Shown here piece after piece: positions 38,948-63,231 of a stretch of 64,000 bases of DNA. The stretch is taken from IMG/VR virus record IMGVR_UViG_3300040801_004034, positions 62,001 to 126,000 of that record, one strand, 5' to 3'. The notes beneath the pieces were generated by a model. It saw only the letters and a list, made by a program, of their open reading frames with translations, ran no database searches and was not told the DNA's origin. The position numbers and the translations under genes were made by a program. Positions within the stretch are counted from its first letter, which is position 1. The number at the start of each line of letters is the position of its first letter.

Positions 38948-38970
38948 GGAACAAATATAACATTCATGCT

Positions 38971-39366
38971 ATGATAAAATACGAAACAAAAAGAATTATT
39001 AGCGTACAAGATTGGGACGAACTTGTATCTGAAACATATGGTAAACCATATTCATTACAACAACAAGATGGTTGTAAAGAACGACAAGTTGAGAATATTA
39101 CCGTACCAGACTTAGAAGCCTGGGATTTTGAGAATGATACTATTCCGGAAGAAGTTAATGGAGATGAAATGGGGGTAAGCTTTAAATCATGGCTTGCAAG
39201 AGATCCAAAACAACCACTTAATACAGGTGATGACTGGGATAGAAAGCATGGGGTACGATTATTCTGGGAACGTAATTTTTATCCTGCTCTAGGTATAATT
39301 ATTAACGACTTACATAAAAAGGGTTTAATTGAAGCTGGTGAATACGGCATTGATATAGACTGGTAA
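38971..39366 (+). CDS. Hypothetical protein
   Basis: 131-aa ORF with its own GGAAC-type promoter. Confidence 0.6.
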   Translation: MIKYETKRIISVQDWDELVSETYGKPYSLQQQDGCKERQVENITVPDLEAWDFENDTIPEEVNGDEMGVSFKSWLARDPKQPLNTGDDWDRKHGVRLFWERNFYPALGIIINDLHKKGLIEAGEYGIDIDW

Positions 39367-39407
39367 AAAAAATTTAAGCAGAAATCAATTACAGGTGCTT
39401 AACGAAC

Positions 39408-39444
39408 AAAAAAAGAGCAGCTTCATTTACGAGGCTGCTCTTTT
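39408..39444. terminator. Bidirectional intrinsic terminator
   Basis: AAAAGAGCAGCTTC-loop-GAGGCTGCTCTTTT between convergent genes, with A/T tracts on both sides. Confidence 0.85.
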
Positions 39445-39462
39445 AATGTTAAATGTTAATGC

Positions 39463-39834
39463 TTAAACGTAACCGAGATGATGAAGTCTTGCTAAGTTAG
39501 CTGAAACTGAATCATAACCAGGTCCTGCTGATACTGTTTGTAGTGTTGTACCAGATGCAACTGTAAACTGTGTTGAAAGACGACCGCTATCAATAATAGC
39601 AATTGTTGAACTATCATAACCAGCATACATTAAGAATACAAACTCATCACCATTATGTATGGTGCTTAAAGTAACAACTGTCGTGTCGGTTCCTTTATCA
39701 GCTGCATTATAAAGTAGCTTTGCTGTACTATCTGCACTCAATGACTGTGCTGTTACATCGTTAAGTGCTGAAACACCATCTGTTACACTTCCTGTGCCGA
39801 AAATTAGTTCATCTGTAAATTGAATATTGCTCAT
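39463..39834 (-). CDS. Late Ser/Thr-rich protein, probably virion structural
   Basis: Full TATAAATA promoter at 39840-39847; amino-acid composition. Confidence 0.55.
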   Translation of the reverse strand: MSNIQFTDELIFGTGSVTDGVSALNDVTAQSLSADSTAKLLYNAADKGTDTTVVTLSTIHNGDEFVFLMYAGYDSSTIAIIDSGRLSTQFTVASGTTLQTVSAGPGYDSVSANLARLHHLGYV

Positions 39835-39876
39835 ATTATTATTTATAGGTTATCATAACCGGATTACAAAAATATC

Positions 39877-40362
39877 TTATTTTAATCTCCCACCTGGGGT
39901 AAAGTAGAAACCTATTACAGCTGCTAATGTTATAATCGAAACAAGTGTTATATGACCAGTTGTAATTACAACAGTAGAATCAAGATTAAGTGGTATAGTA
40001 ATCATACCCCAGAGAAAATCTAAACTCTCTTTGTTAACTGGTGGAAAAAACGTTATCAATTCCACGCTTGGGAATAATGTACATAATACTGAAATAACAA
40101 AAAAGTTTATCATACCTATTACAGCAAGAATACGTCTTGTTTGTCTTGCAAACATCGATGTTTCTGGTGATGAGTCACCAAACACCATTTTCTGAACTTC
40201 AACATCAAGTTTTGATCGTTCTAGATCACGGATCATTTCACGTTTTTCATGAGCTTCTTTAGCTCCGGCAATTCTATCAATAATGCCAGCACCTACTTTA
40301 AGTAAAGACCCCATTCCGGTAGCCCCTAAAGTAGAGAAAATCATTGTAAGTAACCCGATCAT
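39877..40362 (-). CDS. Membrane protein (holin-like candidate)
   Basis: N-terminal amphipathic helix plus two hydrophobic segments, ending IGFYF. Confidence 0.5.
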   Translation of the reverse strand: MIGLLTMIFSTLGATGMGSLLKVGAGIIDRIAGAKEAHEKREMIRDLERSKLDVEVQKMVFGDSSPETSMFARQTRRILAVIGMINFFVISVLCTLFPSVELITFFPPVNKESLDFLWGMITIPLNLDSTVVITTGHITLVSIITLAAVIGFYFTPGGRLK

Positions 40363-40366
40363 AACA

Positions 40367-40477
40367 CTATGCGTTTGACTTACCTGGTTTTACACCGAAT
40401 GTAAGTACTGGTTCTGTCTTAGCTTTAGCATTAGTTGTTTTAGCTTTTGGTTGTTTTGTTTCTTTTTTCTTAAACAT
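40367..40477 (-). CDS. Small basic late peptide
   Basis: TAAATA-N5-ATG at 40477; MFKKKETKQPK. Confidence 0.45.
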   Translation of the reverse strand: MFKKKETKQPKAKTTNAKAKTEPVLTFGVKPGKSNA

Positions 40478-40493
40478 ATAATTATTTATTAAA

Positions 40494-40697
40494 TTACCAG
40501 CTCTGCCATAAAGGTGGTGATTTATAAATAGTTGTTCTAGGTTGTTGCTCTTGTCGCTCACCTTGTTGTTCTATAAAGGGTCTTGTATTTAATTCACGTA
40601 CTGGTTGAGGTCGATATTCTGGTAAACTACTGGGTGATTTACAACCGATAAAAAAACCTGAAACAATGATACAACTAACTAAAACAAACATCTTCAT
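40494..40697 (-). CDS. Small lipoprotein
   Basis: Signal peptide with lipobox-like FIG-C; TAAGTA-N5-ATG. Confidence 0.55.
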   Translation of the reverse strand: MKMFVLVSCIIVSGFFIGCKSPSSLPEYRPQPVRELNTRPFIEQQGERQEQQPRTTIYKSPPLWQSW

Positions 40698-40705
40698 AAC
40701 AATAC

Positions 40706-41407
40706 TTATTTAAGAATATCATATTTTTGTGAATTCATATGTACTGCTAATAATGTCCGTATCTCAGTTTTCATGTAATTGAGATTGATATATTTCCACT
40801 GACCATCTACAAGATAATATATAACAAGATGCTTACATTTTTTACCTGTCATTTCTTCATATAAATGAGCATACATAGAAAGCTGTAAACAGTAACTATT
40901 GAATTCACAAACAGAAAGATGCTGCAGCGGGTATTTATGGTAGTCATTATATGTACTAAAAAATCTAAATCGTCTATTTGTTTTAAAATCCCCTATAAAG
41001 AAACTATCCCCGTCTACAAATATTAAGTCAGCTAAGCCTGCAATGTTATATTCTGTATTATAAACCAAGAACTCACTTTCAATGTTTTTAAACTTCGGGA
41101 TATGAGGCTTACTTTCTTCAAATGTACTATACAACTGTGCAAACTGAGGTTCTTGTTTATTATCAACAATATAGTCTTCCATAACTTTGTGAATCTTAGT
41201 ACCTTTTTCGCATGCAACATCGCATTTATTTTGCCACTGATCTAAAACCATCTGCTTTGGTACACCTTCACGTTTTGCAACTCGTGCAGCATGAAGATGT
41301 TTATCGAATTTAGGTTTATATTGACCAAGCAGTGTTGTCACCGATGTCATTTTTTTACCATTTTCGGTATTTGTATATGTATGTGTTGGCTCGTCGAATA
41401 CAATCAT
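40706..41407 (-). CDS. PD-(D/E)xK (Cas4-like) exonuclease
   Basis: FDEPTHTY, SVTTLL, GT.IH, E, AGLAD, DFKT and Y.LQLS.Y motifs. Confidence 0.85.
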   Translation of the reverse strand: MIVFDEPTHTYTNTENGKKMTSVTTLLGQYKPKFDKHLHAARVAKREGVPKQMVLDQWQNKCDVACEKGTKIHKVMEDYIVDNKQEPQFAQLYSTFEESKPHIPKFKNIESEFLVYNTEYNIAGLADLIFVDGDSFFIGDFKTNRRFRFFSTYNDYHKYPLQHLSVCEFNSYCLQLSMYAHLYEEMTGKKCKHLVIYYLVDGQWKYINLNYMKTEIRTLLAVHMNSQKYDILK

Positions 41408-41465
41408 TTGAATTTATTATAACATAAATGTTTGAAAAACCAAATCCGGTTGTTATAATAAGAAT

Positions 41466-42284
41466 ATGAGATTAAGTATCAGCGGAACAGCAAGCATCGG
41501 AAAGTCAACATTAATAGGTGATATGCTTGCTACATGGCCAGCATTCGAACACACAAAAGTGTCATATAGAGATATTCTTACGAATCAAAATTTACCACAT
41601 AGTAAAGAGTCAACAAAAGAGACACAATGGGCTATTTTGAATCATATGGTTGATCAGATGCAAGGGTACACACCACAAGATAAAGTAATCTTTGATAGAT
41701 GCCCTCTTGATAATTTAGTTTATAGCATGTGGTTATTTGATAAAGGTCTTGGTGGTGTCGACGAGAAGTTTATTGATAAGTGTCTTCCTATTGTATCTGA
41801 AAGTATGAAATCACTTGATATCATATTTTTCATTCCTATGACAAAATTCAATAAAATGAATATTGTAGATAACGGTACAAGAGAAACAGATCCGGTTTAC
41901 ATTTCTGAAATTGATCAAATATTCAAAGGTCTCCAAGCTCAGTACCAACAGCACCCGCAAGAAAATCCTTTCTTTCCGCGAGATGATTCACCAGCTCTTA
42001 TAGAGATTTTCGGATCAAGAAAAGAACGTATTCAAATGATAAAACTTTATCTTGATGATGATGGTGATGTTATTGGTGGGGAAAATGGAGCTAATGAAGT
42101 TTTCTCTCCGGAAAATATCAGTTTAGTTGAAGATCTTTTAAAGGAGCAACAAAAACTAAATGATAGTGAAAAAGCTTATACCGCTGAAATGGACAAAATT
42201 AAGGACTTTGTTAGACATAACAAAGGTGTAGATGTCGGTGTTGATATCAGAAAGCTTTCAAAAGATAAATATGATCTTTATTAA
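41466..42284 (+). CDS. P-loop nucleotide/nucleoside kinase-like protein
   Basis: ISGTASIGKST and IFDRCPLDNLVY motifs. Confidence 0.75.
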   Translation: MRLSISGTASIGKSTLIGDMLATWPAFEHTKVSYRDILTNQNLPHSKESTKETQWAILNHMVDQMQGYTPQDKVIFDRCPLDNLVYSMWLFDKGLGGVDEKFIDKCLPIVSESMKSLDIIFFIPMTKFNKMNIVDNGTRETDPVYISEIDQIFKGLQAQYQQHPQENPFFPRDDSPALIEIFGSRKERIQMIKLYLDDDGDVIGGENGANEVFSPENISLVEDLLKEQQKLNDSEKAYTAEMDKIKDFVRHNKGVDVGVDIRKLSKDKYDLY

Positions 42285-42592: not shown

Positions 42593-42638
42593 ACAATTAT
42601 TTATTGGATTCTCAGAATTAACAACATATAATCATGTT

Positions 42639-44023: not shown

Positions 44024-44108
44024 GAGTTTATTATTTATGATTCTAATTGTGTTTCTACCTACAAACATTGTATCTTGATTATAATGTTACTTATGCTATA
44101 ATCAACAT

Positions 44109-44948
44109 ATGGGTAAAATAGGAATTGCAATAATAACTTGTGATCGACCAAAATTTCTTGAAAAATGTTTGGAATCGATACCGTTTAATTATAATAGATC
44201 ACCAAAAGTTGTAGTTAATGATGGTAATCACAAATACAATCTTGAACAGATTGAAAACATGTATAGTAAGAAACTTGTATCTACCGACATGAAACTCATC
44301 CAGGAACACGGCAAGGAATACCAGGGTGTTTGTAAGTCAAAGAATAAAGCTTTCAAATACCTTCTCGAACAAGATTGTGATTACATTTTTATCATAGAAG
44401 ATGACATGGTCTTTACAGGTGATGTATTCGAGGAATATATCAGAGCTTATAAATCAACAGGTATTCATCACTTCAGCTTTGCTTACCATGGTCCTGCTAA
44501 TAGAGGTAATGTATCCCATGGTACACCACAGCCACGTAAGGTGGTTAACTATGGTGATGTACAAATTTCTCTAAATGCTAACTGTGTCGGGGCTGTATGC
44601 TTTTACACACGTCAATGTCTTGAAGATGTAGGTTTGTTTGATGAAAACTTTGATAAAAATAACTTTGAACATGTTGATCATACATATAGATTAGCTAAAG
44701 CAGGTTATACCACACCTTATTGGTGGTTTGCTGATATTGCAAACAGCTATGATTATATAGATGAACAAGCATGTAGTGAAGAAAATTCGTCTATCCGTAG
44801 AGGTGATAATTGGCAACAAAAAATATGGGAAAGTGCTCAGTTGTTTAAAGATAAACACGGATATATGCCAGCATGGCAAGGGTGTGTACCAGATACACCA
44901 CTTGATAGTGTTTTAATCAATCTCAAAAAGCTCTGTATAACAAGATGA
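44109..44948 (+). CDS. GT2-family glycosyltransferase
   Basis: IITCDRP, VVVNDG, IEDD, VGLFDENF and EH.D motifs. Confidence 0.9.
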   Translation: MGKIGIAIITCDRPKFLEKCLESIPFNYNRSPKVVVNDGNHKYNLEQIENMYSKKLVSTDMKLIQEHGKEYQGVCKSKNKAFKYLLEQDCDYIFIIEDDMVFTGDVFEEYIRAYKSTGIHHFSFAYHGPANRGNVSHGTPQPRKVVNYGDVQISLNANCVGAVCFYTRQCLEDVGLFDENFDKNNFEHVDHTYRLAKAGYTTPYWWFADIANSYDYIDEQACSEENSSIRRGDNWQQKIWESAQLFKDKHGYMPAWQGCVPDTPLDSVLINLKKLCITR

Positions 44949-46537
44949 ACAATCCAATATCATTGATTGTTGCATACAAGCCTGATACTATAGAACGTAT
45001 CAAAAACCTTGTTCATTTCAAACTGTACTACTCTAATCTATTACCATTTGGCGAGATTATCGTCGTAGAAAGTGAAAACGATGTGTTTGAAAAATGTAAA
45101 TTGTATAACGAAGGTTTTTCACGTGCAAAATATGATACAGTATGCTTTATCGATAGTGATATATTTGTTTCCGAATCAGCATTACAGACAGCATATGATT
45201 ATGCTCAGAATCCAGATAACGTTGTATTAGGATATAGTGGTAATGCTATATACATGACATACAAGTTCAAAAATGAGTTAAAAACAGCATTTACATATGA
45301 TGATCTTATCAAACCTATCAGACCATATGATCAATTAGTATTAAATGAAAAAACAGATGATTATCTTGTCGGTAATCTTAATGCAGTAGGTGGTTGCCTT
45401 ATGATGCATAGAAAAGCTTTTGAAGATATCAATGGTTTCAATCCTAACTTTAAAAACTGGGGGTATGAAGATGATGAAATTGTTAAACGTGCTCATATTC
45501 TTAAGAAAAATGTTATTAAGCTGAAAAGATCGCAGCAAAACATGCTGATTCATCTTCCGCATCTAATAGCTAACCCAGATCGTTCAAAACATGAATTTTA
45601 TGAACATAATCACAAGGTAGCAAGTGCACTCGGTAGAATGAACTTCGAACAAGCATCAGAATACATTAAAACATGGGAAATTGATGCTCCTCGAAAGGAG
45701 TTAATCGATGTTGATATAGATGATACTAATTTTGTTGGTTATGATCCGAGCTGCTGTAGGTTTCAACGACCAACTCATTTTAATTGGGATGGATCACGCA
45801 ACTCTAACAGTAAAAGCTTGTTCTTTACAGATAACACACTTAGAAACGCTAAAATACAGACAGAACAATTAAAAGTAGCATGGATACTTGAACCGAGAGC
45901 TGTTGCACCGCATGTTTATAGTTATATTGAACAGAATTACAAGGATTTCAACTATGTATTGACTTATGACAAGCAGCTCCTTAGTTTAGACAAGAGATTC
46001 TTGATATATCCATATGGTACCAGTTGGGTACATAACTTCACTGATGAAAAACAGTTAACTAAGGAGAAACATATCTCAATCATTGCATCTACTAAGAATA
46101 CAACAGTTGGGCATAGGTTAAGACATGAAGTAATACAAAAATTTGATATGCTTAACCATCCTTATATTGATGTATTCGGATCTGGTTATAATAAGATCGT
46201 TAATAAGAAGGATGCATTGGAAAAATATGAATTTTCAATTGTTATTGAGAACTCTATACAAGATACATACTTTACTGAAAAGCTCATTGATTGTTTTGCA
46301 ACTAAAACAGTGCCAATTTACTATGGTACTCCAGATGTTAACCATTACTTTAACAAAAACGGTATTTTGTTTTTTAGCACAGTAGATGAGCTTGAAACCA
46401 TACTTCAAACACTTACAAATCATAGTTATGATGGAATGAAATACGCAATTGAAGATAATTACAAGAGATACCAGGATTTTATAATTCCTGAAGATTATAT
46501 CTACGAAAACTACAAATTTTTATTTGATGATGAATAA
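44945..46537 (+). CDS. Fused glycosyltransferase (GT2/GT7-like N-terminus, GT10-like C-terminus)
   Basis: FIDSD, GG, NGFNPNFKNWGYEDDE; C-terminal YEFSIVIENS..YFTEKLIDCF..TVPIYYG. Confidence 0.85.
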   Translation: MNNPISLIVAYKPDTIERIKNLVHFKLYYSNLLPFGEIIVVESENDVFEKCKLYNEGFSRAKYDTVCFIDSDIFVSESALQTAYDYAQNPDNVVLGYSGNAIYMTYKFKNELKTAFTYDDLIKPIRPYDQLVLNEKTDDYLVGNLNAVGGCLMMHRKAFEDINGFNPNFKNWGYEDDEIVKRAHILKKNVIKLKRSQQNMLIHLPHLIANPDRSKHEFYEHNHKVASALGRMNFEQASEYIKTWEIDAPRKELIDVDIDDTNFVGYDPSCCRFQRPTHFNWDGSRNSNSKSLFFTDNTLRNAKIQTEQLKVAWILEPRAVAPHVYSYIEQNYKDFNYVLTYDKQLLSLDKRFLIYPYGTSWVHNFTDEKQLTKEKHISIIASTKNTTVGHRLRHEVIQKFDMLNHPYIDVFGSGYNKIVNKKDALEKYEFSIVIENSIQDTYFTEKLIDCFATKTVPIYYGTPDVNHYFNKNGILFFSTVDELETILQTLTNHSYDGMKYAIEDNYKRYQDFIIPEDYIYENYKFLFDDE

Positions 46538-47291: not shown

Positions 47292-47314
47292 CAATACCAC
47301 ACTTAAATACTACT

Positions 47315-47872: not shown

Positions 47873-48463
47873 ATGATTATAAAAAATATTGCTTGTTATG
47901 ATGGTGAATTAATTCATGGACGGTTTGCTTACGATTTCTTTCGTAAAAAGACACTACCTATCGGTAATATTGTTGCATTCCGTGCTCCTATGAACGTAGA
48001 AACGTCAGGAATGATTGACAAAGAGGATCTGATTTCTTCCGATTTCATTTACAGTGATGATGCATTGAGTTTCTGTTGGGAAATTCCCAATTTGTGCCCG
48101 ACTGGTGCAGTAGCATTTCAAAGATTGTTTAATACTTTGATGGCAAACATTCTCAGTAGTAAATACCTCCAAAAACCTATTGAAGTTGATGGGGATGACC
48201 TTTTAGTTCATGATGAATTCGAAGGTAGTGATGGATCACTTCAAAAGGTTGGTAAATGTTCGGTGAGTATTACATATTCGAAGAATAATGTTGCAATTGG
48301 TCATACTGGTATCAATGTTAATGCTGGTTCTAAAGCTCCTAACTTTGCATACGGTACAAAAATGACAGATGAACAGTGTAATCAGTTTATGCAAGATGTG
48401 ATCGATATGTTTTACAATCTAGCTGATGATTTGTTTTTATCTTCAACCAAGATAACACTATAA
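47873..48463 (+). CDS. DUF366-like protein (BPL/LplA fold)
   Basis: YDG..I, M.D.ED..DFIYSD, AFQRL, GDDL, GK.SVSI and H.GIN motifs. Confidence 0.7.
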   Translation: MIIKNIACYDGELIHGRFAYDFFRKKTLPIGNIVAFRAPMNVETSGMIDKEDLISSDFIYSDDALSFCWEIPNLCPTGAVAFQRLFNTLMANILSSKYLQKPIEVDGDDLLVHDEFEGSDGSLQKVGKCSVSITYSKNNVAIGHTGINVNAGSKAPNFAYGTKMTDEQCNQFMQDVIDMFYNLADDLFLSSTKITL

Positions 48464-50406: not shown

Positions 50407-52038
50407 ATGATAAACAAATTACTTAGCTCCTTCCCTGAAGGTTACGAGCCGAACACAGCTCAAACACAGATATTAACACAAATGCATAAAGCATTTGAGG
50501 ATGGTTATAAGTTTGTTATTGTTTCTGCTCCAACTGGCTCAGGAAAAAGCTTCATATCAAAGACATTAGCAAATGCTAGCGATCGCTGCACTGACACATG
50601 GGACAAATTGATTACCAGCTATGATGCTTTCCAGGTTAACCAAATGGGGGAATATACGAACGAAGAAGCCTGCTTAGATGAGCCGCCGCATGGTGCTTTT
50701 GCTTTAACAATTACAAAATCACTTCAGGAGCAATACAAACAACTGTTCGATAGTGCTACATTACTTAAAGGTAAGAGTAATTACCCGTGCGAATTGGATA
50801 ATGAGTTCGATGTAGAAACAGCACCATGTGTTTTTACTACAGGTCTTAAACAAACATGCTGGATGCAGAACAAATGTCTATATTACAATGCAAGAAACAC
50901 TGCTTTAAAAAGTGATTTCACTGCTTTGAACTATAAAATGTTTCTAAGCACACCAAACCATGTTAAACACAGAAATTATATTGTATGTGATGAAGCATCT
51001 GAACTAGAAGGTGAACTTGTAAGCCAATTTTCATGTAATATAACAAGAAGTAAATGGAAAAAAGCTGGGATCAACATACCAAAACTGCTTAGTAAGAAGC
51101 CATCTCAGATCAGACAATGGGTTATGGATATTATCGATGATGTTGAAACAGAACTGAGGAAATTGAAAGATAAGCTTGCGAAAAATCCAAAGCTTATGAC
51201 GCAATCTGAAAAATACAAGTTTCTTGCATTGAGAACATTCAATATGAAGTTGTCGTTAATATACAAAACATGGCCAGACTGTGAATATGTAGCTCAAAAT
51301 GATGATGATGAAATCAAATTAATGCCGCTTAAGATTGATACACTTACAGATACAATTTTTAAGTATGGTGATAAGATTGTTTTAATGTCTGCTACCATTA
51401 TTGATCATAAAAACTTTGCTAAAACACTGGGTATAGACAAATACAAGTATATCGAAGTAGGTAGTGCATTTGATCCTGAAAAATCACCTATTCATATCAA
51501 TACAAAGATAAGGCTCAACTACAAAAACATGCAAACAAGTTTACCTACTGTGATTAAGCAAGTAAAACAACTCTGTGATCATCATAAAGGTGTAAAGGGC
51601 ATCATTCATACACATACATCCTATATTGCTAACCAGATACAACGAGCTGTCGGTAATGACCCGAGGTTTTTGTTTAGAAATGATGAACAAAACAATGAAC
51701 ATATTCTTGAAATGCATGAAAATAGTAGTGAGCCTACTATACTCGTATCACCAAGCTTAGGATATGGTGTTGATCTCAAAGATGATCTTGCAAGATTTCA
51801 AATTATTGTAAAAGCTCCGTATTTACCATTAGGTGATGAACGAATCAAAAAGCTCTTTGAACTAGATAAAAACTGGTACTCAAATGCAATGTTGTGTAAT
51901 GTAGTTCAGCAATGCGGACGAGGAGTTCGTAATAAAAACGATTTCTGTGATACATATATCATGGACGGGTGCATTTATGACGCGATTGTCCGTAATAAAG
52001 ACAAGCTTCCAAAGCATTTTATTGATAGATTTGTTTAA
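50407..52038 (+). CDS. DinG/Rad3-like SF2 helicase
   Basis: APTGSGKS, four Cys (Fe-S), DEAS, MSAT, GVD and QQCGRGVR motifs. Confidence 0.9.
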   Translation: MINKLLSSFPEGYEPNTAQTQILTQMHKAFEDGYKFVIVSAPTGSGKSFISKTLANASDRCTDTWDKLITSYDAFQVNQMGEYTNEEACLDEPPHGAFALTITKSLQEQYKQLFDSATLLKGKSNYPCELDNEFDVETAPCVFTTGLKQTCWMQNKCLYYNARNTALKSDFTALNYKMFLSTPNHVKHRNYIVCDEASELEGELVSQFSCNITRSKWKKAGINIPKLLSKKPSQIRQWVMDIIDDVETELRKLKDKLAKNPKLMTQSEKYKFLALRTFNMKLSLIYKTWPDCEYVAQNDDDEIKLMPLKIDTLTDTIFKYGDKIVLMSATIIDHKNFAKTLGIDKYKYIEVGSAFDPEKSPIHINTKIRLNYKNMQTSLPTVIKQVKQLCDHHKGVKGIIHTHTSYIANQIQRAVGNDPRFLFRNDEQNNEHILEMHENSSEPTILVSPSLGYGVDLKDDLARFQIIVKAPYLPLGDERIKKLFELDKNWYSNAMLCNVVQQCGRGVRNKNDFCDTYIMDGCIYDAIVRNKDKLPKHFIDRFV

Positions 52039-53870: not shown

Positions 53871-53873
53871 AAC

Positions 53874-54693: not shown

Positions 54694-57600
54694 ATGTCAA
54701 TTAAAGCCTTATCAGATTATACAGTATACGCGAAGTATGCAAAATATATTCCAGAACAAAAACGCCGTGAAACATGGAAAGAGCAAGTCGACCGTGTTTT
54801 TGAAATGCATGAGCATAAATACCAGCTACAGTTAGCATCAAATTCAGAGTTCAAAGAGTTATTTTATCAAGCAAAACAAGCTGTGATGAAAAAACAGGTG
54901 CTCGGATCTCAACGAGCATTGCAATTTGGTGGACCGAGTATTGAACGCCATAATGACAAGATGTACAACTGTTTTTCAGGAGATACTAAACTGATAACAT
55001 CAACAGGAGTAATGCAATTTGATGATTACACCCCTGGTGATCAAATTTCAGTTCTAACACATAATGGTCGATGGAAATCAGCTGTTGTAAATCAATATGG
55101 TAAACAGCAACTTTATAAATTAACCTTTAAAAACGGTCAAAATATACATACAGTCAAATGTACACGTGATCATAAATGGATTTTAAAAAATGGTAATGAA
55201 ACTACGAATATCAATATAGGTGATAAAATATTAACATCTAAGACGACATTTACGTTCGATTACGATAATGCAACACCGATTGAAAGGTTATACTGGTGTT
55301 ATGGTTATGTGTTTGGTGATGGAACAACTGTTAAAACAGATAGCGGAACATATTCATCTGCAAGATTATGCGGCGATGATGCAAAATATGAATATAGATT
55401 TACAGAACAAGGATTTAAATCATCATCTTCAGCGTCATTAAATGGTGATGTAATAGTATATACAGGTAAATATGATAAGACAGCACCAGATCCGAAAAGA
55501 GATTCTATCGAATTAATACAAGCATTTACAAGAGGTTATCTTGACGCTGATGGATCAAAAAGTAGTAACGTTAGGAAGGGGGATATGACAAAACCTAACC
55601 CGTTTAATATGATTTCTGCTGAAGATTTCGAACATCAACAGTTTATCGAAACATGTTTTCCTATTGCTGGTGTGTTTATCAAAAAAGTATATGATAAAAC
55701 AGGTACAAAAACAAACTTAGGTACTATCAAAAACGGTAAAACATATTCTATACAAACAACTTTTGACAGAGAAAACAAACATGCAAAGTCATTTAAATTG
55801 ATTGATATAGAAAAATTACACATTGATAATGTGTGGTGTGTAAGTGTTGAAGATGATAAATCATTTACTATGCCAAATGGTATGGTTACCGGTAATTGCG
55901 CAACAACATACATCGATAGACATACCGTCTTCGGTGAGATTATGTATATGTTACTATGCGGTTGTGGTGTCGGGTTCAGTGTTCAGTATAAGCATATTAA
56001 CCAACTACCTAAGATACAAAAACGTAATGGTAATACCGAAAAATTTATTATTGATGACTCAATTGAAGGTTGGGCTGATAGTATCAGTGCATTAGTGAAC
56101 TCATATTTTGTATCAAAAGGTAAATTTAGTGCGTTCAATGGTAAGAAAATCGAATTTGATTACTCGCTTATCAGACCAGAAGGTGCGTTTATATCTGGCG
56201 GCTTTAAAGCACCTGGACCAAACGGTCTTAGAAAAGCTCATGAAAAGATTGCTGCTATTATTGAAAAAAGACTTTCAGAAAACAGTAATAAACTCAAACC
56301 AATTAATGCTTATGATATAATCATGCATACTGCAGATGCTGTCCTTAGTGGTGGTGTTAGAAGAAGTGCAACAGCTTGTGTATTTTCTTATGATGATAAA
56401 GAAATGATCACAGCTAAGACAGGTAATTGGTTCTACGATAACCCTCAACGTGGCCGTAGTAACAACAGTGCTCTTCTCATAAGAAATAAGACAACGTTTG
56501 AACAATTCCAAGAAATAATGATCTCTGTTAAGGAATGTGGTGAGCCAGGCTTTGTTTTTGCTGATAATGAAGATATTGTTTTTAATCCATGCTTTGAAAT
56601 CGGTATGAGACCAAAACTTAACGACGGCAGAAGTGGGGTACAGTACTGTAATCTTACAGAAACAAACGGAAAGAAATGTACTACTAAGGAAGAGTTCTTT
56701 CATGCATCAGAAATGGCAGCTATCCTTGGTACCTTACAAGCAGGCTATACAGATTTCAAGTATCTCGGTGAAGTTACTGAAAAAATTGTAAGACATGAAG
56801 CATTACTCGGTTGTTCTATCACAGGCATGATGGATAACCCTGATATATTGTTCAGTCCTGCAAACCAACGTAAAGCTGCTGAAATTATCAAGGATACTAA
56901 CAGAAAAGTTGCAAAAATGATTGGTATCAACCCTGCAGCAAGAACAACATGCTGTAAACCAGCTGGTACTACGAGTTGTGTACTTGGGACAGCTAGTGGT
57001 ATTCACCCTCACCATGCAAAACGTTATATCCGTCGTGTTCAAGCCAATCGCCTTGAATTTCCACTGAGAAAATTCACAGAAGTTAATCCACTAGCAGTAA
57101 ATGAGTCTGTTTGGAGCGAAAACAAGACAGATATGGTAATTAGCTTCCTTTGCGAGGTGCCAGCCGGTGCTGTAACAAAGAATATGATGTCTGCTTTGGA
57201 TCTTCTTGATAAAGTTAAGACAACACAGCAAAATTGGGTAGAATATGGTACAAATAAAGAGTTATGCATTGATAATACACTAAGGCACAATGTATCAAAC
57301 ACAATAACCGTACAACCAGATGAATGGGACCAAGTAACAAAGTATATTTACAGAAATCGCCAGTGGTTTGCAGCTATTTCATTGCTTCCAGCTAGTGGGG
57401 ATAAAGATTATCCACAAGCACCGTTCACAACAGTGCACACACCTATTGAAATGGCAAAAGAATATGGTGATGCATCTGTTCTTGCATCAGGTGTAATTGT
57501 AGATGGGCTAAAGGCGTTCGATGACTTATGGCCGGCATGTGATGCAGCACTTGGAAAAGGAGCACCACTACCAGAATTGCCAAAAGAGCCGAAATATCCA

Positions 57601-57900
57601 ACAAAACGCGATAATAAAGACCTTGCTCAGTATTTCAATGATAAGGAAGCATATGAAACTATTCTTCTCAAGCATGATTGGGTACGTAGAGCAAGACAAT
57701 TTGCTGATCGATACCTTGATGGCGATGTTCAGAAGATGACTTACTGTTTGAAGGATGTTAATAACTGGAAGACATGGTGTGATCTACGTAGAGAATATAA
57801 GGAAGTTGATTGGTCAACAGTTGTTGAAGATGAACCGTTCTACATTGATATCAATACCACTGCTGCGCAAGCTTGTCAGGGTGGTAAATGTGAATTATAA
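54694..57900 (+). CDS. nrdJ: Class II (AdoCbl-dependent, monomeric RTPR-type) ribonucleotide reductase with intein
   Basis: RRETW, GCGVGF, SGGVRRSA, GEPG, NPCFE thiyl Cys, CNLTE, KPAGT and C-terminal CQGGKC. Confidence 0.93.
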   Translation: MSIKALSDYTVYAKYAKYIPEQKRRETWKEQVDRVFEMHEHKYQLQLASNSEFKELFYQAKQAVMKKQVLGSQRALQFGGPSIERHNDKMYNCFSGDTKLITSTGVMQFDDYTPGDQISVLTHNGRWKSAVVNQYGKQQLYKLTFKNGQNIHTVKCTRDHKWILKNGNETTNINIGDKILTSKTTFTFDYDNATPIERLYWCYGYVFGDGTTVKTDSGTYSSARLCGDDAKYEYRFTEQGFKSSSSASLNGDVIVYTGKYDKTAPDPKRDSIELIQAFTRGYLDADGSKSSNVRKGDMTKPNPFNMISAEDFEHQQFIETCFPIAGVFIKKVYDKTGTKTNLGTIKNGKTYSIQTTFDRENKHAKSFKLIDIEKLHIDNVWCVSVEDDKSFTMPNGMVTGNCATTYIDRHTVFGEIMYMLLCGCGVGFSVQYKHINQLPKIQKRNGNTEKFIIDDSIEGWADSISALVNSYFVSKGKFSAFNGKKIEFDYSLIRPEGAFISGGFKAPGPNGLRKAHEKIAAIIEKRLSENSNKLKPINAYDIIMHTADAVLSGGVRRSATACVFSYDDKEMITAKTGNWFYDNPQRGRSNNSALLIRNKTTFEQFQEIMISVKECGEPGFVFADNEDIVFNPCFEIGMRPKLNDGRSGVQYCNLTETNGKKCTTKEEFFHASEMAAILGTLQAGYTDFKYLGEVTEKIVRHEALLGCSITGMMDNPDILFSPANQRKAAEIIKDTNRKVAKMIGINPAARTTCCKPAGTTSCVLGTASGIHPHHAKRYIRRVQANRLEFPLRKFTEVNPLAVNESVWSENKTDMVISFLCEVPAGAVTKNMMSALDLLDKVKTTQQNWVEYGTNKELCIDNTLRHNVSNTITVQPDEWDQVTKYIYRNRQWFAAISLLPASGDKDYPQAPFTTVHTPIEMAKEYGDASVLASGVIVDGLKAFDDLWPACDAALGKGAPLPELPKEPKYPTKRDNKDLAQYFNDKEAYETILLKHDWVRRARQFADRYLDGDVQKMTYCLKDVNNWKTWCDLRREYKEVDWSTVVEDEPFYIDINTTAAQACQGGKCEL
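54970..55896 (+). mobile_element. Intein with LAGLIDADG endonuclease (309 aa)
   Basis: YN|CFSGDT start, T.DHKW block B, GYVFGDG and RGYLDADG motifs, ends VTGN|C. Confidence 0.93.
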
Positions 57901-57923
57901 ACGGAACATCTATAATATTCAGT

Positions 57924-58484
57924 ATGAAATATGCTAATTTATACACCGCTAAAGGTGATACTGGTATGACCGACCTTTGGTCTGGTGGAAGAGTATTGAA
58001 AAATCATTTCCGTATTAAAGCGGTTGGTAAAATTGATACATTCCATGCAACTCTTGGTCTTTGTCATCAATATGAGCCTTCTTCGGATCATTATACAATA
58101 CTCAAAGAGTTTTTACATAAAGTACAGACAGATCTTACCAAAATTATGGGTGTAATTGCTAGTGAAACTATCAAAGATGGTTTTGTTGTTGAGTTTGATG
58201 TGATGAATCAGTTTTTATATAAACACATTGTTAAATATGCTGAATGGCTTGATGATCAATCAATAAAACAACAGGGTTGGAAGATGTATGGTGAAGGAGG
58301 AGCAGCCGCTGCTCAGTATGATTACACAACCACTATTTGCCGTGAAGTTGAGATCATGATTTATGATCTGGAAAATGTTTACGGAATGACTATCAGTGAT
58401 GGAATGAAACAGTATTTCAATATGTTGAGTAAAGTCCTATATCTCATTGCACGCATATATGAACATCAGGATGATATTAAATAA
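57924..58484 (+). CDS. pduO: PduO-type cob(I)alamin adenosyltransferase
   Basis: YTAKGDTGMT.L..G.RV.K...RI.A.G.ID; CREVE; YFN.LS..LY..AR. Confidence 0.88.
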   Translation: MKYANLYTAKGDTGMTDLWSGGRVLKNHFRIKAVGKIDTFHATLGLCHQYEPSSDHYTILKEFLHKVQTDLTKIMGVIASETIKDGFVVEFDVMNQFLYKHIVKYAEWLDDQSIKQQGWKMYGEGGAAAAQYDYTTTICREVEIMIYDLENVYGMTISDGMKQYFNMLSKVLYLIARIYEHQDDIK

Positions 58485-58488
58485 TATT

Positions 58489-58758: not shown

Positions 58759-58788
58759 ATTATTATTTTCGTATGATATAATCATCGA

Positions 58789-59530: not shown

Positions 59531-59595
59531 GTTCATTGTATAAATATTTTTAGAAATCGCCAGTAGTGGCGCTCGTCCGAAAGGAAGTAAATAAT

Positions 59596-60411: not shown

Positions 60412-60435
60412 GAACAAATAGAAAATAAACATTTC

Positions 60436-60469
60436 AAATACCTATTCGTAATTGGATAGGTATTTTTTT
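60436..60469 (+). terminator. Intrinsic terminator
   Basis: AAATACCTATTC-loop-GGATAGGTATTTTTTT. Confidence 0.8.
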
Positions 60470-60502
60470 GGAGACGGAACAACACTATACTAGACATACA
60501 TT

Positions 60503-61108
60503 ATGAAAAAGACACGATACTACTGCAAGCCAAGCGATGACGTTTGCTTGTTACTTACTCAAGCATGGACACCACTTGGCGTGACATCTGCTAGAGAAGC
60601 GTTTCATAAATTGATCAGACAAGCACATAAAGCTAACCCATCTGTTAAAGCAATTGATGCAAATGGTAACATGCTAATGTATGATGAATGGATCAAACAA
60701 GGAGAATACTTTGATAATCATCCATTCATGCGTGGTGTCAACCAAGATTACCCAGTTCCAACAGTTCTTGTAACATCCGATTCGTTTTTCTATCGCACAA
60801 GTAATCCAAAGGTTACTCTTCGTATGCTTTACAAGCACTACAATGGTAAGTGCCGTATTTGTGGTAAGAAGAAGCCAATGAGTGAAATGAGTAAAGAACA
60901 CATCAAACCAAGAAGTAAAGGTGGTGGTAACGGTCCTGATAATTTAACACTAACATGTCGTGATTGTAACTCTAAGAAAGGTGATTTATTTCCATATCTT
61001 GTAGATGGCAAGCCATTGGAGCCAGTTGCTGTAGTTCAGGAAAAGATTCGTATGCGTCGTCCAGAATGGCGCGATATTGTCAAGAAAGAACAACAATCTG
61101 AAGATTAA
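60503..61108 (+). CDS. HNH endonuclease
   Basis: CRICG...EHIKPRSKGG....NLTLTCRDCNSKKG. Confidence 0.9.
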   Translation: MKKTRYYCKPSDDVCLLLTQAWTPLGVTSAREAFHKLIRQAHKANPSVKAIDANGNMLMYDEWIKQGEYFDNHPFMRGVNQDYPVPTVLVTSDSFFYRTSNPKVTLRMLYKHYNGKCRICGKKKPMSEMSKEHIKPRSKGGGNGPDNLTLTCRDCNSKKGDLFPYLVDGKPLEPVAVVQEKIRMRRPEWRDIVKKEQQSED

Positions 61109-61127
61109 TAGATATTGGTCAACAGAT

Positions 61128-61386
61128 ATGTTTTTCAAAGCCTGCTCCTCTTGAAAAGGACTCAAGAGGAGCAGTTATTGCTATCGGTAAAAACGTCGCA
61201 TACAACTATCAAGGTAGTGTAACGGTCGGAACGATCAAAGAAATCAAACGTAATAAGTGGAAAAAATGTAGACCTGGTTTCGAAGGACAACATTGGTATC
61301 AATTAAAATTTGTGATGACAGTTGATCATGAATCAGGTGAATTCACATCAACAATTAAAAATCCGAATAGTTTCATTATCATTTGA
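61128..61386 (+). pseudogene. Probable small gene with a 1-nt frameshift in the T5 run right after its ATG
   Basis: 85-codon open frame 61129-61386 without an upstream ATG; deleting one T at 61131-61135 gives MFSKPAPLEKDSRG...NPNSFIII. Confidence 0.45.
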
Positions 61387-61403
61387 TAACTAATTTAAAT
61401 TTT

Positions 61404-61637
61404 ATGCAAGAATTAAAACAATTTGTAGAAGAAGGTGGTAATGTTGTAGAGTGTGAGCCTAGAACATATTATTATGATACTGGTTATTCATACTCATTTT
61501 CAAAACCTGGTGATGATGGGTGTATCGTAATGGTTAACTCTATAGGCGACGCTATTAAAAAATACAATTTAAAATACATTAAGTCATATACAATTAAACA
61601 GCCTCAACCTAGTGATGGTGAATTAACGGAACAATGA
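61404..61637 (+). CDS. Hypothetical protein
   Basis: 77-aa ORF. Confidence 0.45.
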   Translation: MQELKQFVEEGGNVVECEPRTYYYDTGYSYSFSKPGDDGCIVMVNSIGDAIKKYNLKYIKSYTIKQPQPSDGELTEQ

Positions 61638-61649
61638 TATCATATTAGT

Positions 61650-62162
61650 ATGAAAAAGGTTATTTATTACCAAGGTATTCGAAGAGAAGGTGCATGGGAC
61701 AGCACTGAGCACTTTAACTCTAAAGTTGACGGGCTTGAAAAGGCCGGTTATGTTGTAGAGCGTGTACCATCTTGCAGAGATTATGATCTATCTCTTAGAA
61801 AGTTTCTAGACATTACACCAACTACAGATGTCGAAATGATTGTTGGTTGTTCTCTTGGTGGTTTTTGGGCAAATAAACTTGCATGCAAATATAACATTCC
61901 TGTTTTGCTGATTAACCCGCAATTGCTACCGCTTTATTATACCATGGATGAGCGCGCAATTGATACAAAACAAATCGAACGTACATTCTTTCTTGCAAAA
62001 GATGATGATATTCTAGATTATAGACTCACACAACATTTTATTGAAACCAACAGTATCAATGGTGATGTGCGTGTTTTTGATTATGGTCAACACCATTTTG
62101 GTTCTGAGAAATGTGTTAATGAAATTGTTGAGTACATAAATAACTATGTACCATGCGATTAA
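61650..62162 (+). CDS. YqiA/YcfP-like alpha/beta hydrolase
   Basis: GCSLGGFWA nucleophile elbow, LINP, DD.LD, HHF. Confidence 0.85.
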   Translation: MKKVIYYQGIRREGAWDSTEHFNSKVDGLEKAGYVVERVPSCRDYDLSLRKFLDITPTTDVEMIVGCSLGGFWANKLACKYNIPVLLINPQLLPLYYTMDERAIDTKQIERTFFLAKDDDILDYRLTQHFIETNSINGDVRVFDYGQHHFGSEKCVNEIVEYINNYVPCD

Positions 62163-62752
62163 ATTTTCAAGAGTTCTTTTGTGAATCATTTTCAAACCTT
62201 TTCATTAACAAAGATGATGAAAAGCGTAGACAGTTAGCAGATCAAATCCATAGTATGGTGGGTGCATCATATCAGAAAGCTACTGGTCAGCAAAACTTAG
62301 CTTTTGGTATGCAGTCTCCAGAAGCTATGCTTGAAACCATACCATTTTGGAAAATCGCAAAACGTGATGGACGTATAAGAGCAGTCATTCTTTATAAAGA
62401 TAAGAATGGAAGAAAATCGATGGCAATTGCAACCGATAGTACTAAAGAAGGAAAAAATCTTCTCAAACAAATGCTGCATGATGACATGATACGAAATCGA
62501 GCATACAGTGAAATTTCCGATCCATCACTTTCATTCAGAAAGAAAATTCTCCCAGCAAATTTATCAATTCAAGACATAGCTATACCATTTGAAGAAGTTC
62601 AGAAGATGATGCCTAATATAACTAGACCACCACAAGATGATCCGCATGTTATAAAACATCCTGAACTTGAGCCATATTTCTATCAGAGAGAGTTCGGTGG
62701 AGATCTAAAGACAAAAATAATGGTCGGTCAAATTGGTAATGAAATATCATAA
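62153..62752 (+). CDS. Hypothetical protein (possible internal head protein)
   Basis: N-terminus MRLNFQEFFCES; FWK...LYK.K.GRK, YSE.S, Y.R..GG....K.M.G. Confidence 0.6.
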   Translation: MRLNFQEFFCESFSNLFINKDDEKRRQLADQIHSMVGASYQKATGQQNLAFGMQSPEAMLETIPFWKIAKRDGRIRAVILYKDKNGRKSMAIATDSTKEGKNLLKQMLHDDMIRNRAYSEISDPSLSFRKKILPANLSIQDIAIPFEEVQKMMPNITRPPQDDPHVIKHPELEPYFYQREFGGDLKTKIMVGQIGNEIS

Positions 62753-62876
62753 AGGGAACTATCATATAATAGAGACAGAAATACGTTCTTTATCAGAAAA
62801 ATCAAAAATAGTTCAAAAAAAAATAGTTTAAAAAGAAGGAACTATGATATACTTGGCATAAGTAATAACAACGACA

Positions 62877-62978
62877 ATGAATTTACATACACAATATAGC
62901 TTTAACAAATGTGAGTCTGATATTAGACAATCACGCCCGATAGCGAATGTGCTGAATACAGGAGGTAGCGGGGATTGA
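62877..62978 (+). other. Candidate leader peptide (33 aa) upstream of a terminator
   Basis: MNLHTQYSFNKCESDIRQSRPIANVLNTGGSGD* downstream of the 62838 promoter. Confidence 0.35.
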
Positions 62979-63023
62979 CCACGAGATAATTTTAAGTTCT
63001 GAAAAAGAACAATAATAGAATTG

Positions 63024-63056
63024 AACTCGGGTCAGAAAAAGGACACCGGGTTTTTT
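63024..63056 (+). terminator. Intrinsic terminator / attenuator hairpin
   Basis: AACTCGG-GTC...GAC-A-CCGGGTT followed by a T tract. Confidence 0.6.
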
Positions 63057-63231
63057 AATGATTTTAAAGATAGACAAAAATAGGAACACAGATATAATTT
63101 AAACATAATTTAGTAAATGGCGCCTTGAGCCAAATAAAGAATCAAGGTTAGTACGTCCACTGTAAAAGCATCATGGGCACCTAAACCAATTATATAATTG
63201 AGAGAGGTGAAAGTAAGATTTATAAAATGGT

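Follow-up and report, generated by a model that had tools for sequence, protein, structure and literature searches.

A five-base motif, GGAAC, placed at a rigid distance from a sigma70-type -10 hexamer, marks what is most likely a new class of promoter without a -35 box in an uncultured group of T4-like phages of roughly 210 kb. These putative promoters lie so close to the genes that transcripts are predicted to begin at the first base of the start codon, so most of the phage appears to be expressed without ribosome-binding sites. The analysis started from a stretch of 64,000 nucleotides (the window; positions 62,001 to 126,000 of the IMG/VR record IMGVR_UViG_3300040801_004034) and was extended to the whole 221,292-bp phage genome and to other phages and bacteria. 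The phage is a very distant T4-like myovirus.

Occurrence and position of the GGAAC motif

In the initial annotation of the window, seven intergenic copies of GGAAC-N5-TAnnnT had been listed, and all seven were found at those positions with those hexamers; hence, the observation itself was confirmed. The pattern had 9 matches in the window, whereas shuffled sequences gave a mean of 2.03 and none of 100 shuffles reached 9. In the whole genome, 80 matches were detected, 21 on the + strand and 59 on the - strand, against 3 for a reversed-pattern control. Of 470 TATAAT hexamers, 55 carried GGAAC exactly 5 nt upstream, while every other spacing from 0 to 12 gave 2 or fewer, the next most common 5-mer at that position occurred 6 times, and one-mismatch variants of GGAAC were at background. 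Furthermore, about 75 of the 80 sites were located directly upstream of, and in the same direction as, an ORF start or a non-coding RNA region, although about 90% of the genome is coding; the motif is therefore not equally frequent inside ORFs, an outcome that would have argued against the initial proposal. The sites lie in the short gaps between genes, and several follow hairpins with T-runs.

The matches in the window, here called class B promoters where they fit the regulon, together with the features used for comparison, were the following:

38948..38963 (+), class B promoter (GGAAC-N5-TAACAT); the ATG of a 131-aa gene (38971-39366, PHROG 27943, function unknown) lies 7 nt after the hexamer.
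57903..57918 (+), class B promoter (GGAAC-N5-TAATAT, or read as N3-TATAAT), directly after the stop codon of the ribonucleotide reductase gene; the ATG of a 186-aa gene of unknown function (57924-58484) lies 5 nt after the hexamer.
60476..60491 (+), class B promoter (TATACT), preceded by an A/T-rich hairpin and a T-run; the ATG of an HNH homing-endonuclease gene (60503-61108) lies 11 nt after the hexamer, which implies a leader of about 4 nt.
61628..61643 (+), class B promoter (TGATATCAT); the ATG of a 170-aa gene (61650-62162) lies 6 nt after the hexamer, and a 199-aa gene follows at 62153-62752.
62755..62770 (+), class B promoter (TATAAT) with no ORF downstream, heading a non-coding stretch, 62771-63082 (fold z = -2.7).
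62838..62853 (+), class B promoter (TGATATACT) in tandem with the previous one; no ORF of 45 codons or more follows.
63083..63098 (+), class B promoter (TATAAT), heading a 450-nt structured non-coding stretch (63099-63548, fold z = -3.7, no Rfam match) and then the tRNA array.
63549..63797 (+), the first two tRNA genes (Phe, Thr) of an array of about 40 tRNAs that continues beyond the window and also holds a tmRNA and a GOLLD RNA, with further class B promoters interspersed through it.
21016..21031 (+), a match inside an ORF (hexamer TAAATT, no start codon downstream), absent from the initial list; probably a chance copy and not part of the regulon.
38781..38796 (-), a match antisense inside the QueE-like gene (38189-38947), with no ORF downstream and also absent from the initial list; either a chance copy or an antisense promoter.
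15787..16275 (-), a gp55-type late sigma factor gene, the only sigma-like gene found, with a class A promoter (TTGATT-N16-TATAAT at 16281-16308) and the ATG 5 nt after the hexamer.
10577..10604 (-), an example of a class A promoter (TTGATA-N16-TATAAT, then 6 nt, then ATG) before the DNA polymerase gene 7976-10570, in the same leaderless register but with a canonical -35.
2871..2876 (+), an example of a class C, T4-late-type promoter (TAAATA, then 5 nt, then ATG) before the 413-aa gene 2882-4123; there are about 20 such promoters in the window.

Architecture of the putative promoters and the predicted leaderless register

The composite element was A-GGAAC-nn-T-G-A-TATAAT-A-nnnn-T-ATG. GGAAC was invariant and its spacing rigid, and no base was conserved upstream of it, which confirmed the absence of a -35 box; nevertheless, the copy at 63083 also has TAGACA 16 nt upstream of its TATAAT, which resembles a -35. 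The -10 was a canonical TATAAT, extended by TG (TGnTATAAT) in about half of the copies in this genome. The ATG was found exactly 6 nt after the hexamer in 46 of the 80 sites, and these ATGs open ORFs of 55-370 codons; it was found 5-7 nt after the hexamer in 56 of 80. The predicted start site is hence the A of the ATG, and T at -1 and A at +1 fit the usual start-site preference. These start sites are inferred from sequence alone, since the only runs holding this DNA are DNA runs from one microbial-mat sample.

Two further promoter classes shared this register, namely TTGAnn-N17-TATAAT before replication genes (class A) and TAAATA-N5-ATG before late genes (class C), the presence of gp55 giving TAAATA its meaning as the late promoter. 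Only 17 of the 243 larger ORFs showed even a loose Shine-Dalgarno-like match. A -10 motif a few bp before an ORF has been shown by experiment to drive leaderless mRNAs in Deinococcus-Thermus (PMC12340547; PMC3160421).

The interpretation given in the initial annotation was only partly supported. It was right that this is a distinct third promoter-like class beside a TTGA/-35 class and a T4-late class, that it lacks a -35 box, that GGAAC lies at -22 to -18 if transcription starts 7 nt after the hexamer, and that it precedes accessory genes and the tRNA region and clusters at the right end of the window. However, the positions -22 to -18, described there as not used by standard elements, are exactly where the beta'-zipper "Z-element" lies (T7A1 AACCT, T7A2 AACAT; PMC3173786). 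An unusual host sigma factor had been proposed as one possible reader, whereas the canonical -10 points to the host primary sigma for that hexamer. The position of the ATG, which is the main feature, had been missed, and the six copies clustered in the window are the edge of a regulon of about 75 promoters, the motif being shared by a whole uncultured phage clade. The early timing and the host or phage factor proposed there remain hypotheses.

An alternative reading, that the block is not a promoter but an RNA-level signal inside polycistronic transcripts, either a translation-initiation enhancer or an endonuclease processing site, was also considered. The genes lack Shine-Dalgarno sequences throughout, A/U-rich upstream sequence can aid initiation, and the motif is always on the sense strand, immediately before the ATG. 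Nevertheless, about nine copies have no ORF downstream and instead precede tRNA, GOLLD or other non-coding stretches, part of the block is an exact -10 consensus, and some copies directly follow terminator-like hairpins. Moreover, functionally distinct gene sets carry three different blocks, one of them the T4 late promoter, whose sigma factor the phage encodes, and at 22 nt from the ATG, GGAAC is too far away to act as a Shine-Dalgarno sequence. This reading was considered very unlikely.

Conservation, regulon and the candidate readers of GGAAC

The same promoter was dense in many IMG/VR contigs of one uncultured clade of about 210 kb. A relative with only 45% DNA polymerase identity had 41 sites against 8 for the control, and 16 further IMG/VR contigs each had 1-21 copies of the 25-nt pattern against 0 for the control, 14 of them on a single strand. 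A conserved 99-aa gene keeps a class B promoter in three genomes. Additionally, the helicase gene has a class A promoter here and a class B promoter in two relatives, which argues that GGAAC and the -35 box are functionally interchangeable. By contrast, the motif was not enriched in the nine isolated phages examined (phiYS40, PAU, PTm1, HTVC008M, Melnitz, C48C1, Syn9, S-CRM01 and S-PM2), nor in about 490 bacterial genomes (5 + 401 + 81) from three phyla.

The GGAAC promoters precede clusters of fast-evolving small ORFans, tRNA-maturation genes, ligase, homing endonucleases, the tRNA/tmRNA/GOLLD region and unnamed non-coding stretches. In our interpretation this regulon would be the pre-replicative accessory set of a distant T4-like jumbo phage, while replication genes would use the canonical -35/-10 promoters of class A and structural genes the gp55-type promoters of class C.

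The composite element, the invariance and fixed 5-bp spacing of GGAAC, the absence of a -35 element and the distance of 6 nt (range 5-7) to the start codon of a real ORF are shown by the sequence. What we infer is that the host core RNA polymerase with its primary sigma reads TATAAT, plus the TG extension where present, that it starts at the A of the ATG to give leaderless mRNAs translated without a Shine-Dalgarno sequence, and that GGAAC replaces the -35 box as the upstream anchor. We are highly confident that this is a real promoter class without a -35 box, confident that the mRNAs are leaderless, and reasonably confident of the promoter, leaderless and host sigma-A parts taken together.

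As the reader of GGAAC we slightly favor, on present evidence, a protein specific to this phage clade that docks on the holoenzyme in a fixed geometry, a functional analogue of sigma appropriation by T4 MotA/AsiA that would act at -20 rather than -30 and would be either delivered by the virion or made very early. The full statement including this adaptor is tentative, and even if class B is a promoter, the adaptor falls short of an even chance. It is suggested by the invariance of all five bases, since the known Z-element has a "loose" consensus with less than 2-fold effects (PMC3173786), and by the confinement of the motif to this clade among the genomes examined. However, no candidate adaptor was identified, since the conserved small proteins of unknown function gave no DNA-binding lead, and if class B promoters are the earliest, the adaptor would have to be injected with the DNA, which is an extra assumption. 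Many class B promoters are good extended -10 promoters that could work with sigma-A polymerase alone, so GGAAC might modulate rather than specify. A contig from another T4-like lineage carries seven class B promoters in a gene cassette without the rest of the architecture, which fits reading by the host at least as well.

The main rival is that the host polymerase reads GGAAC by itself, as a strong, host-lineage-specific version of the Z-element contacted by the beta' zipper and zinc-binding region or by a lineage-specific part of the primary sigma. Together with a consensus, extended -10, it would replace the -35 box, no phage protein would be needed, and these promoters could fire as soon as the DNA enters the cell. 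GGAAC shares an AAC core with T7A1 and T7A2, and its register relative to the -10 hexamer agrees with theirs to within 1 bp. The Z-element can substitute for the -35 box when the -10 is strong, as shown with T. aquaticus polymerase, and with E. coli and B. subtilis polymerases it also contributed to promoter activity (PMC3173786). The near-perfect TATAAT, often with TG, the position before what look like the earliest genes, the exchange of classes A and B at the helicase gene, the cassette in the unrelated T4-like contig and the failure to find a phage factor are all in agreement with this reading. Against it, all five bases and the spacing are invariant across hundreds of sites, whereas single substitutions in the known Z-element have less than 2-fold effects, and the beta' zipper is conserved among bacteria, yet neither the nine phages, which come from diverse hosts, nor the bacterial genomes were enriched for the motif. 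Reading five base identities also implies major-groove contacts, which current structures are not known to show for the polymerase at -20. Direct reading is possible, but was judged somewhat less probable than the adaptor and, overall, rather unlikely.

A phage-encoded or virion-packaged RNA polymerase, or a second phage sigma, recognizing the whole conserved element of about 27 nt from -24 to +3 in the manner of T7-like, N4-like or phiKZ-like enzymes that read long invariant promoters, was considered very unlikely. In some relatives the element is conserved almost base for base from -24 to +3, which resembles promoters of phage polymerases, and several large virion-module ORFs (1220, 793 and 624 aa) matched no family, divergent virion polymerases being hard to detect. 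However, no polymerase family matched any large ORF, and the searches for specificity factors detected no MotA, no AsiA, no sigma70 region 2 or 4 and no ECF region 4, gp55 being the only phage sigma found. Furthermore, the core of the element is a textbook sigma70 -10, including the TG extension, at the textbook distance from the start, classes A and B are interchangeable at one gene, and the phage has the T4 late system (gp55 and a gp45-like clamp), which uses the host core polymerase.

Comparison with known promoter systems

The closest element is the Z-element of beta'-zipper promoters (Yuzenkova et al., 2011; PMC3173786), which also lies at -22 to -18 in the spacer, acts together with a strong -10, can replace the -35 box and has an AAC core. 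Here, the 5-mer is GGAAC, invariant and at one fixed spacing, the register differs by 1 bp, and a contact with the beta' zipper would be assumed by analogy only. Extended -10 promoters (TGnTATAAT), including the middle/late promoters of Thermus phage P23-45 type, also have no -35 box and a consensus -10, with TG at -15/-14 as in many copies here, but they lack the additional invariant element found 2 bp further upstream.

In T4 middle promoters, read through MotA/AsiA sigma appropriation, a phage-specific upstream box also replaces the -35 box in front of a sigma70-type -10, and these promoters serve pre-replicative genes and tRNA genes in a T4-type phage. Nevertheless, the box sequence (GGAAC, not TGCTTtA) and its position (-20, not -30) differ, no MotA or AsiA homologue was found, and the replication genes use canonical -35 promoters here. 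The leaderless "-10 adjacent to ORF" genes of Deinococcus-Thermus and Actinobacteria likewise have TAnnnT about 6 nt before the start codon and no Shine-Dalgarno sequence, and the middle/late mRNAs of Thermus phage phiYS40, also a low-GC myovirus, are reportedly leaderless (Sevostyanova et al., 2007). Those promoters have no GGAAC element, phiYS40 having 8 matches against 7 for the control, and here the register holds for three promoter classes in a T4-like phage.

The -35 element of ECF (group IV) sigma factors is the same 5-mer, but its spacing to the -10 is about 16-17 bp and that -10 is CGTC-like, whereas here the spacing is 5 bp to TATAAT, and no ECF sigma or region 4 domain was present in five clade genomes. 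Finally, although the promoter architecture is different, the T4-type early promoter cassettes in hyperplastic regions (PeSL) also consist of dense arrays of near-identical promoters, each before a small fast-evolving ORF, in which, as here, the gene content turns over while the promoters persist.

Anatomy of the GGAAC element

The pattern GGAAC-N5-TAnnnT was found 9 times in the window, whereas shuffled sequences gave a mean of 2.03 matches and none of 100 shuffles reached 9. All seven copies listed in the initial annotation were recovered at their positions, so the observation itself held. The two additional copies, at 21016 (+) and 38781 (-), lie inside ORFs. The window is bases 62,001-126,000 of a 221,292-bp IMG/VR virus record with 35.5% GC, rated complete by CheckV, and this whole record contains 80 copies of the pattern against 3 for the reversed pattern.

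To further delve into the structure of the element, the 80 sites were aligned. No position upstream of GGAAC carried more than 0.3 bit of information, so there is no -35 box at 17 +/- 1 bp upstream of the -10. A generic -35/-10 scan likewise showed no enrichment (32 found against 30.4 expected). An A was preferred just before GGAAC. Since T1, A2 and T6 of the hexamer are fixed by the pattern, only the remaining positions are informative, and these were T3 in 67, A4 in 68 and A5 in 72 of the 80 sites; 55 of the 80 are exact TATAAT. The hexamer is followed by an A, and T-A-T-G follows five bases later (T at hexamer +6). At the positions of an extended -10, T was found at -15 in 46 of 80 sites and G at -14 in 34 of 80 in this genome, while TG was near-universal in the dense cluster at 193-203 kb and in the relatives G008, G009 and G011.

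The ATG lies exactly 6 nt after the hexamer in 46 of 80 sites and 5-7 nt after it in 56 of 80, and these ATGs open ORFs of 55-370 codons. With the hexamer at -12 to -7, the A of the ATG is the predicted +1 and GGAAC lies at -22 to -18. Of the 470 TATAAT hexamers in the genome, 55 have GGAAC exactly 5 nt upstream, no other spacing from 0 to 12 gives more than 2, no other 5-mer at that position occurs more than 6 times, and one-mismatch variants of GGAAC are at background. The element is therefore invariant and rigidly spaced.

Gene context and register of three promoter-like classes

The phage is a very distant T4-like myovirus, with a gp43 family-B DNA polymerase, gp46, gp20 portal, gp18 sheath, gp6, gp23, gp45- and gp62-like proteins, gp32, UvsX and a gp55-type late sigma factor. 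Its polymerase is only about 29% identical to that of any isolated phage. When the sequences upstream of the 243 larger ORFs were examined, a Shine-Dalgarno-like match was found, by a loose test, in only 17 cases. Nevertheless, these sequences showed three promoter-like classes in the same register, placed so that the predicted start site is the A of the ATG (examples in the window at 2871-2876 (+), 10577-10604 (-) and 16281-16308 (-)). Class A, TTGAnn-N16-18-TATAAT-N6-ATG, precedes the DNA polymerase, UvsX, gp32, gp55, a clamp-loader-like ATPase, dUTPase, dTMP kinase, FolE2 and a glycosyltransferase. Class B is the GGAAC class. Class C, TAAATA-N5-ATG, is the T4 late box, precedes structural genes and numbers about 40-60 copies.

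Class B precedes dense clusters of small ORFs, especially at genome 193-203 kb on the minus strand, and also DNA ligase, a CCA-adding enzyme, a Thg1-like enzyme, a phosphoesterase, a GatB/YqeY-like protein and an HNH endonuclease. With no ATG downstream, it precedes the array of about 40 tRNAs, a tmRNA and a GOLLD RNA, plus several structured non-coding stretches. In the window, the copies at 62755, 62838 and 63083 head the non-coding lead-in to the tRNA array. The features concerned, together with others observed in the genome, are as follows (L010, L013 and L016 denote sequence segments used in the analysis).

L013:49-17667 (genome about 125.5-143.2 kb): about 40 tRNA genes, with a one-piece tmRNA (tag GENQLMAA) at L013:15170-15518 and a tRNA(CUA) with an amber-suppressor anticodon at L013:12650-12726; TAG is still used as a stop codon (45 of 234 genes) and no sign of recoding was seen
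L013:17525-17972 (genome 143025-143472): a GOLLD RNA (Rfam RF02032, 179 bits), downstream of three tandem GGAAC promoters (genome 142401, 142455, 142597) and next to tRNA genes
window 63099-63548 (+) and genome 203149-203605 (+): structured non-coding stretches preceded by GGAAC promoters without an ORF, with fold z-scores of -3.7 and -2.1; the second has 51% GC against 35.5% for the genome and the window stretch has no Rfam match; candidate new non-coding RNAs
genome 203100-203260 (L016:17600-17760): GGAAC promoters diverging back to back, at 203117 (-) and 203133 (+), marking a switch point between two transcription directions in the accessory region
window 11701-11910 (-): a group I intron (Rfam RF00028, 112 bits) between the ORFs at 10601-11641 and 12056-12895, which probably splits a gene
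window 54694-57900 (+) and L010:2975-3625 (-): a 1068-aa ribonucleotide reductase with an intein-like insert (weak Pfam Intein_splicing match), as has a clamp-loader-like AAA ATPase; the reductase gene has a late-type TAAATA promoter
window 34941-35969 (-), 38189-38947 (+), 47873-48463 (+) and 44109-46537 (+): FolE2 GTP cyclohydrolase, a QueE-like radical SAM enzyme, DUF366 and two glycosyltransferases, together suggesting 7-deazaguanine and/or sugar modification of the phage DNA

Several lines of evidence support reading these elements as promoters for leaderless mRNAs. The core of class B is a textbook -10, with the TG extension where present, at the textbook distance from a purine start that follows a T. 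The three classes partition by gene function much as the T4 temporal classes do, and the phage encodes the sigma factor for class C. About nine class B copies precede RNA genes rather than ORFs, and some copies follow terminator-like hairpins. An RNA-level signal was also considered and rejected, and is kept only as a minor rival. Experiments in Deinococcus-Thermus show that a -10 motif a few bp before an ORF drives leaderless mRNAs (PMC12340547), and comparative work reads TA-like signals about 10 bp before starts in the same way (PMC3160421). A search of sequencing runs for this sequence found only four DNA runs from a single microbial-mat sample. The sequence, spacing and position of the element and the lack of a -35 box were established directly from the genome, whereas the start sites and the leaderless 5' ends are predicted, and a protein that contacts GGAAC, or any dependence on the beta' zipper, is hypothetical. 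The timing of class B, whether early or middle, is likewise inferred only from gene content and from analogy with the T4 hyperplastic regions.

The register is not a general property of marine T4-like phages. It was shared by the relatives G001, G008 and G009, but in cyanophage Syn9 the TAAATA boxes mostly lie 15-26 nt upstream, with leaders and some Shine-Dalgarno sequences. A T4-like genome in which early, replication and late genes all sit in a leaderless register, with so few Shine-Dalgarno-like matches, is unusual. It bears on how leaderless translation is used in bacteria and is a strong clue to the host.

Conservation in related phages and distribution elsewhere

Two IMG/VR relatives share 45% polymerase identity with this phage. 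The complete one, G001 (209 kb), has 41 sites against 8 for the control, 37 of them on one strand; N5 is again the only enriched spacing, and its class C promoters have the same register. Additionally, a scan of IMG/VR for GGAAC-NN-TGATATAAT-N6-ATG returned at least 117 stretches. Many of the contigs have dense arrays of the motif, for example 27 sites in 12 kb, and GC of 30-43%. Sixteen large contigs each carry 1-21 copies of the 25-nt pattern against 0 for the control, 14 of them on a single strand. CheckV completeness values imply genomes of about 210 kb for most of them. Six of the sixteen fragments contain a T4 portal gene, and one of these portals is 57% identical to the portal of this phage but at most 33% identical to that of any isolate. 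In practice, the 25-nt pattern recovers members of this clade from metagenomes and gives exact, albeit predicted, gene starts.

The analysis of orthologues showed that class A and class C genes are core genes and often keep their promoter class (C to C in 15 pairs; A to A or -10-only in 7), while class B genes are mostly non-core ORFans. Roughly 100 core ORFs are shared by this phage and G001. One conserved 99-aa gene keeps a class B promoter in three genomes. The helicase gene (window 50407-52038) has a -35-type, class A promoter in this phage (window 50372-50401 (+)) and a class B promoter in the two relatives G008 and G009. The same gene has thus switched promoter class, which suggests that GGAAC and the -35 box are interchangeable.

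The motif was not enriched in the phages phiYS40, PAU, PTm1, HTVC008M, Melnitz, C48C1, Syn9, S-CRM01 or S-PM2, nor in five named bacterial genomes, 401 Pseudomonadota or 81 Campylobacterota, a set that did not extend to collections of Bacteroidota, Cyanobacteriota, Deinococcota, Actinomycetota or Aquificota. There was one exception outside the clade. G018 (IMGVR_UViG_3300021959_000031) is a contig whose portal is of the Kyanoviridae type, 52-54% identical to Melnitz and cyanophage portals and 30% to that of this phage. It carries seven tandem paralogous genes at 39.8-42.9 kb (segment L254), each with a GGAAC promoter in the leaderless register, but the rest of the contig lacks this architecture. 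The cassette may have been transferred from the GGAAC clade, or the two phages may share a host.

The host could not be inferred from sequence similarity. The DNA polymerase and the portal protein of the relative G008 were at most about 33% identical to those of any isolated phage, and no near DNA match was found. A search of bacterial genome contigs with PhoH returned hits of 33-37%, mostly in Arcobacteraceae and other low-GC taxa, which was not informative. A Deinococcus-Thermus or phiYS40-like association was considered because of the predicted leaderless mRNAs and low GC, but phiYS40 lacks the motif, and the apparent marine origin of many clade contigs, as guessed from their IMG sample numbers, argues against it. 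A Bacteroidota host was considered because of the missing Shine-Dalgarno sequences and the tmRNA tag GENQLMAA. Nevertheless, this conflicts with the canonical TTGA/TATAAT promoters, and the jumbo phages PAU and PTm1 lack the motif.

Candidate readers of GGAAC and comparison with known promoter systems

Profile searches were carried out to identify a trans-acting factor. No MotA, AsiA, sigma70 region 2 or 4, or ECF region 4 was found: PF09158 and PF09010, searched for MotA and AsiA, gave no match at E <= 1 in the whole genome, although very divergent analogues cannot be excluded, and there was no Sigma70_r2, r4 or r4_2 match other than the weak one to gp55. A weak Sigma70_r4 hit lies in a non-core ORF that looks like an HTH homing endonuclease. 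Conserved small class A proteins gave no DNA-binding lead, one being Sm-like/DUF6561 and one having no match, and no RNA polymerase was found among the large ORFs. A phage polymerase or second sigma is regarded as a minor rival.

The initial annotation had proposed a third promoter class without -35 boxes, likely an early regulon read by an unusual host sigma factor or a phage factor, and this interpretation as a whole was partly supported. Given that class B is a promoter, a clade-specific adaptor docked on the host sigma-A holoenzyme is slightly favored here, although tentatively, over direct reading by a host-lineage-specific feature of the polymerase, which also remains possible. A broader reading, which is doubtful on present evidence, is that an abundant, uncultured clade of roughly 210-kb T4-like phages expresses nearly its whole genome as leaderless mRNAs from three promoter classes, the largest of which would be controlled by an unidentified clade-specific protein redirecting the host sigma-A polymerase to an invariant GGAAC box at -20. 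This would be a new mode of sigma appropriation, unrelated to MotA/AsiA, and in this view the lack of Shine-Dalgarno sequences could let the phage separate its own translation from that of the host.

The element was then compared with known promoter types. With respect to canonical sigma70 promoters, class B has the -10 hexamer about 7 nt upstream of the predicted start but not the TTGACA -35 hexamer. With respect to T4 middle promoters, there is no conservation around -30, where the MotA box (TGCTTtA) would be centered. Class B also does not carry the TATAAATA-type box of T4 late promoters read by gp55, since it has TATAAT and not TAAATA, which belongs to the separate class C. ECF sigma promoters have GGAAC at -35 with a spacer of about 16-17 bp to a CGTC-type -10, and this identity was rejected because the spacing here is 5 bp to TATAAT and no ECF sigma gene was found. 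Sigma54 promoters (TGGCAC-N5-TTGCW, with GG at -24 and GC at -12) share the N5 spacing. However, the downstream box is TATAAT, GGCAC variants are at background (2 copies) and the implied start would fall after the ATG, and this identity was also rejected. Class B conforms to promoters of leaderless mRNAs, in which the -10 is adjacent to the ORF, in the position of the ATG and the scarcity of Shine-Dalgarno-like matches.

Full-text literature searches for GGAAC as a phage promoter element found no precedent. Phage promoter classes have repeatedly revealed new ways of controlling bacterial RNA polymerase, for example MotA/AsiA, gp55/gp33/clamp and gp39. Here, an invariant box defines hundreds of promoters across a widespread uncultured phage clade. 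Under the inferred start site, its position at -22 to -18, which the initial annotation had taken to be unused by standard sigma70 elements or the T4 MotA box, is exactly where the Z-element lies, and only this weak, loosely defined element is known at that position. The Z-element is contacted through the beta' zipper and can replace the -35 box when the -10 is strong (T7A1 AACCT, T7A2 AACAT; PMC3173786), and the occurrence of a class A and a class B promoter before the same orthologous gene in different genomes agrees with such a substitution. Nevertheless, only the AAC core is shared, and the Z-element is described as loose, with modest effects, whereas GGAAC is invariant across hundreds of sites and restricted to one phage clade, apart from the cassette in G018. 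If the polymerase reads GGAAC directly, this would be the first natural, strong promoter family of the Z-element type; if a phage protein reads it, this would be a new appropriation mechanism.
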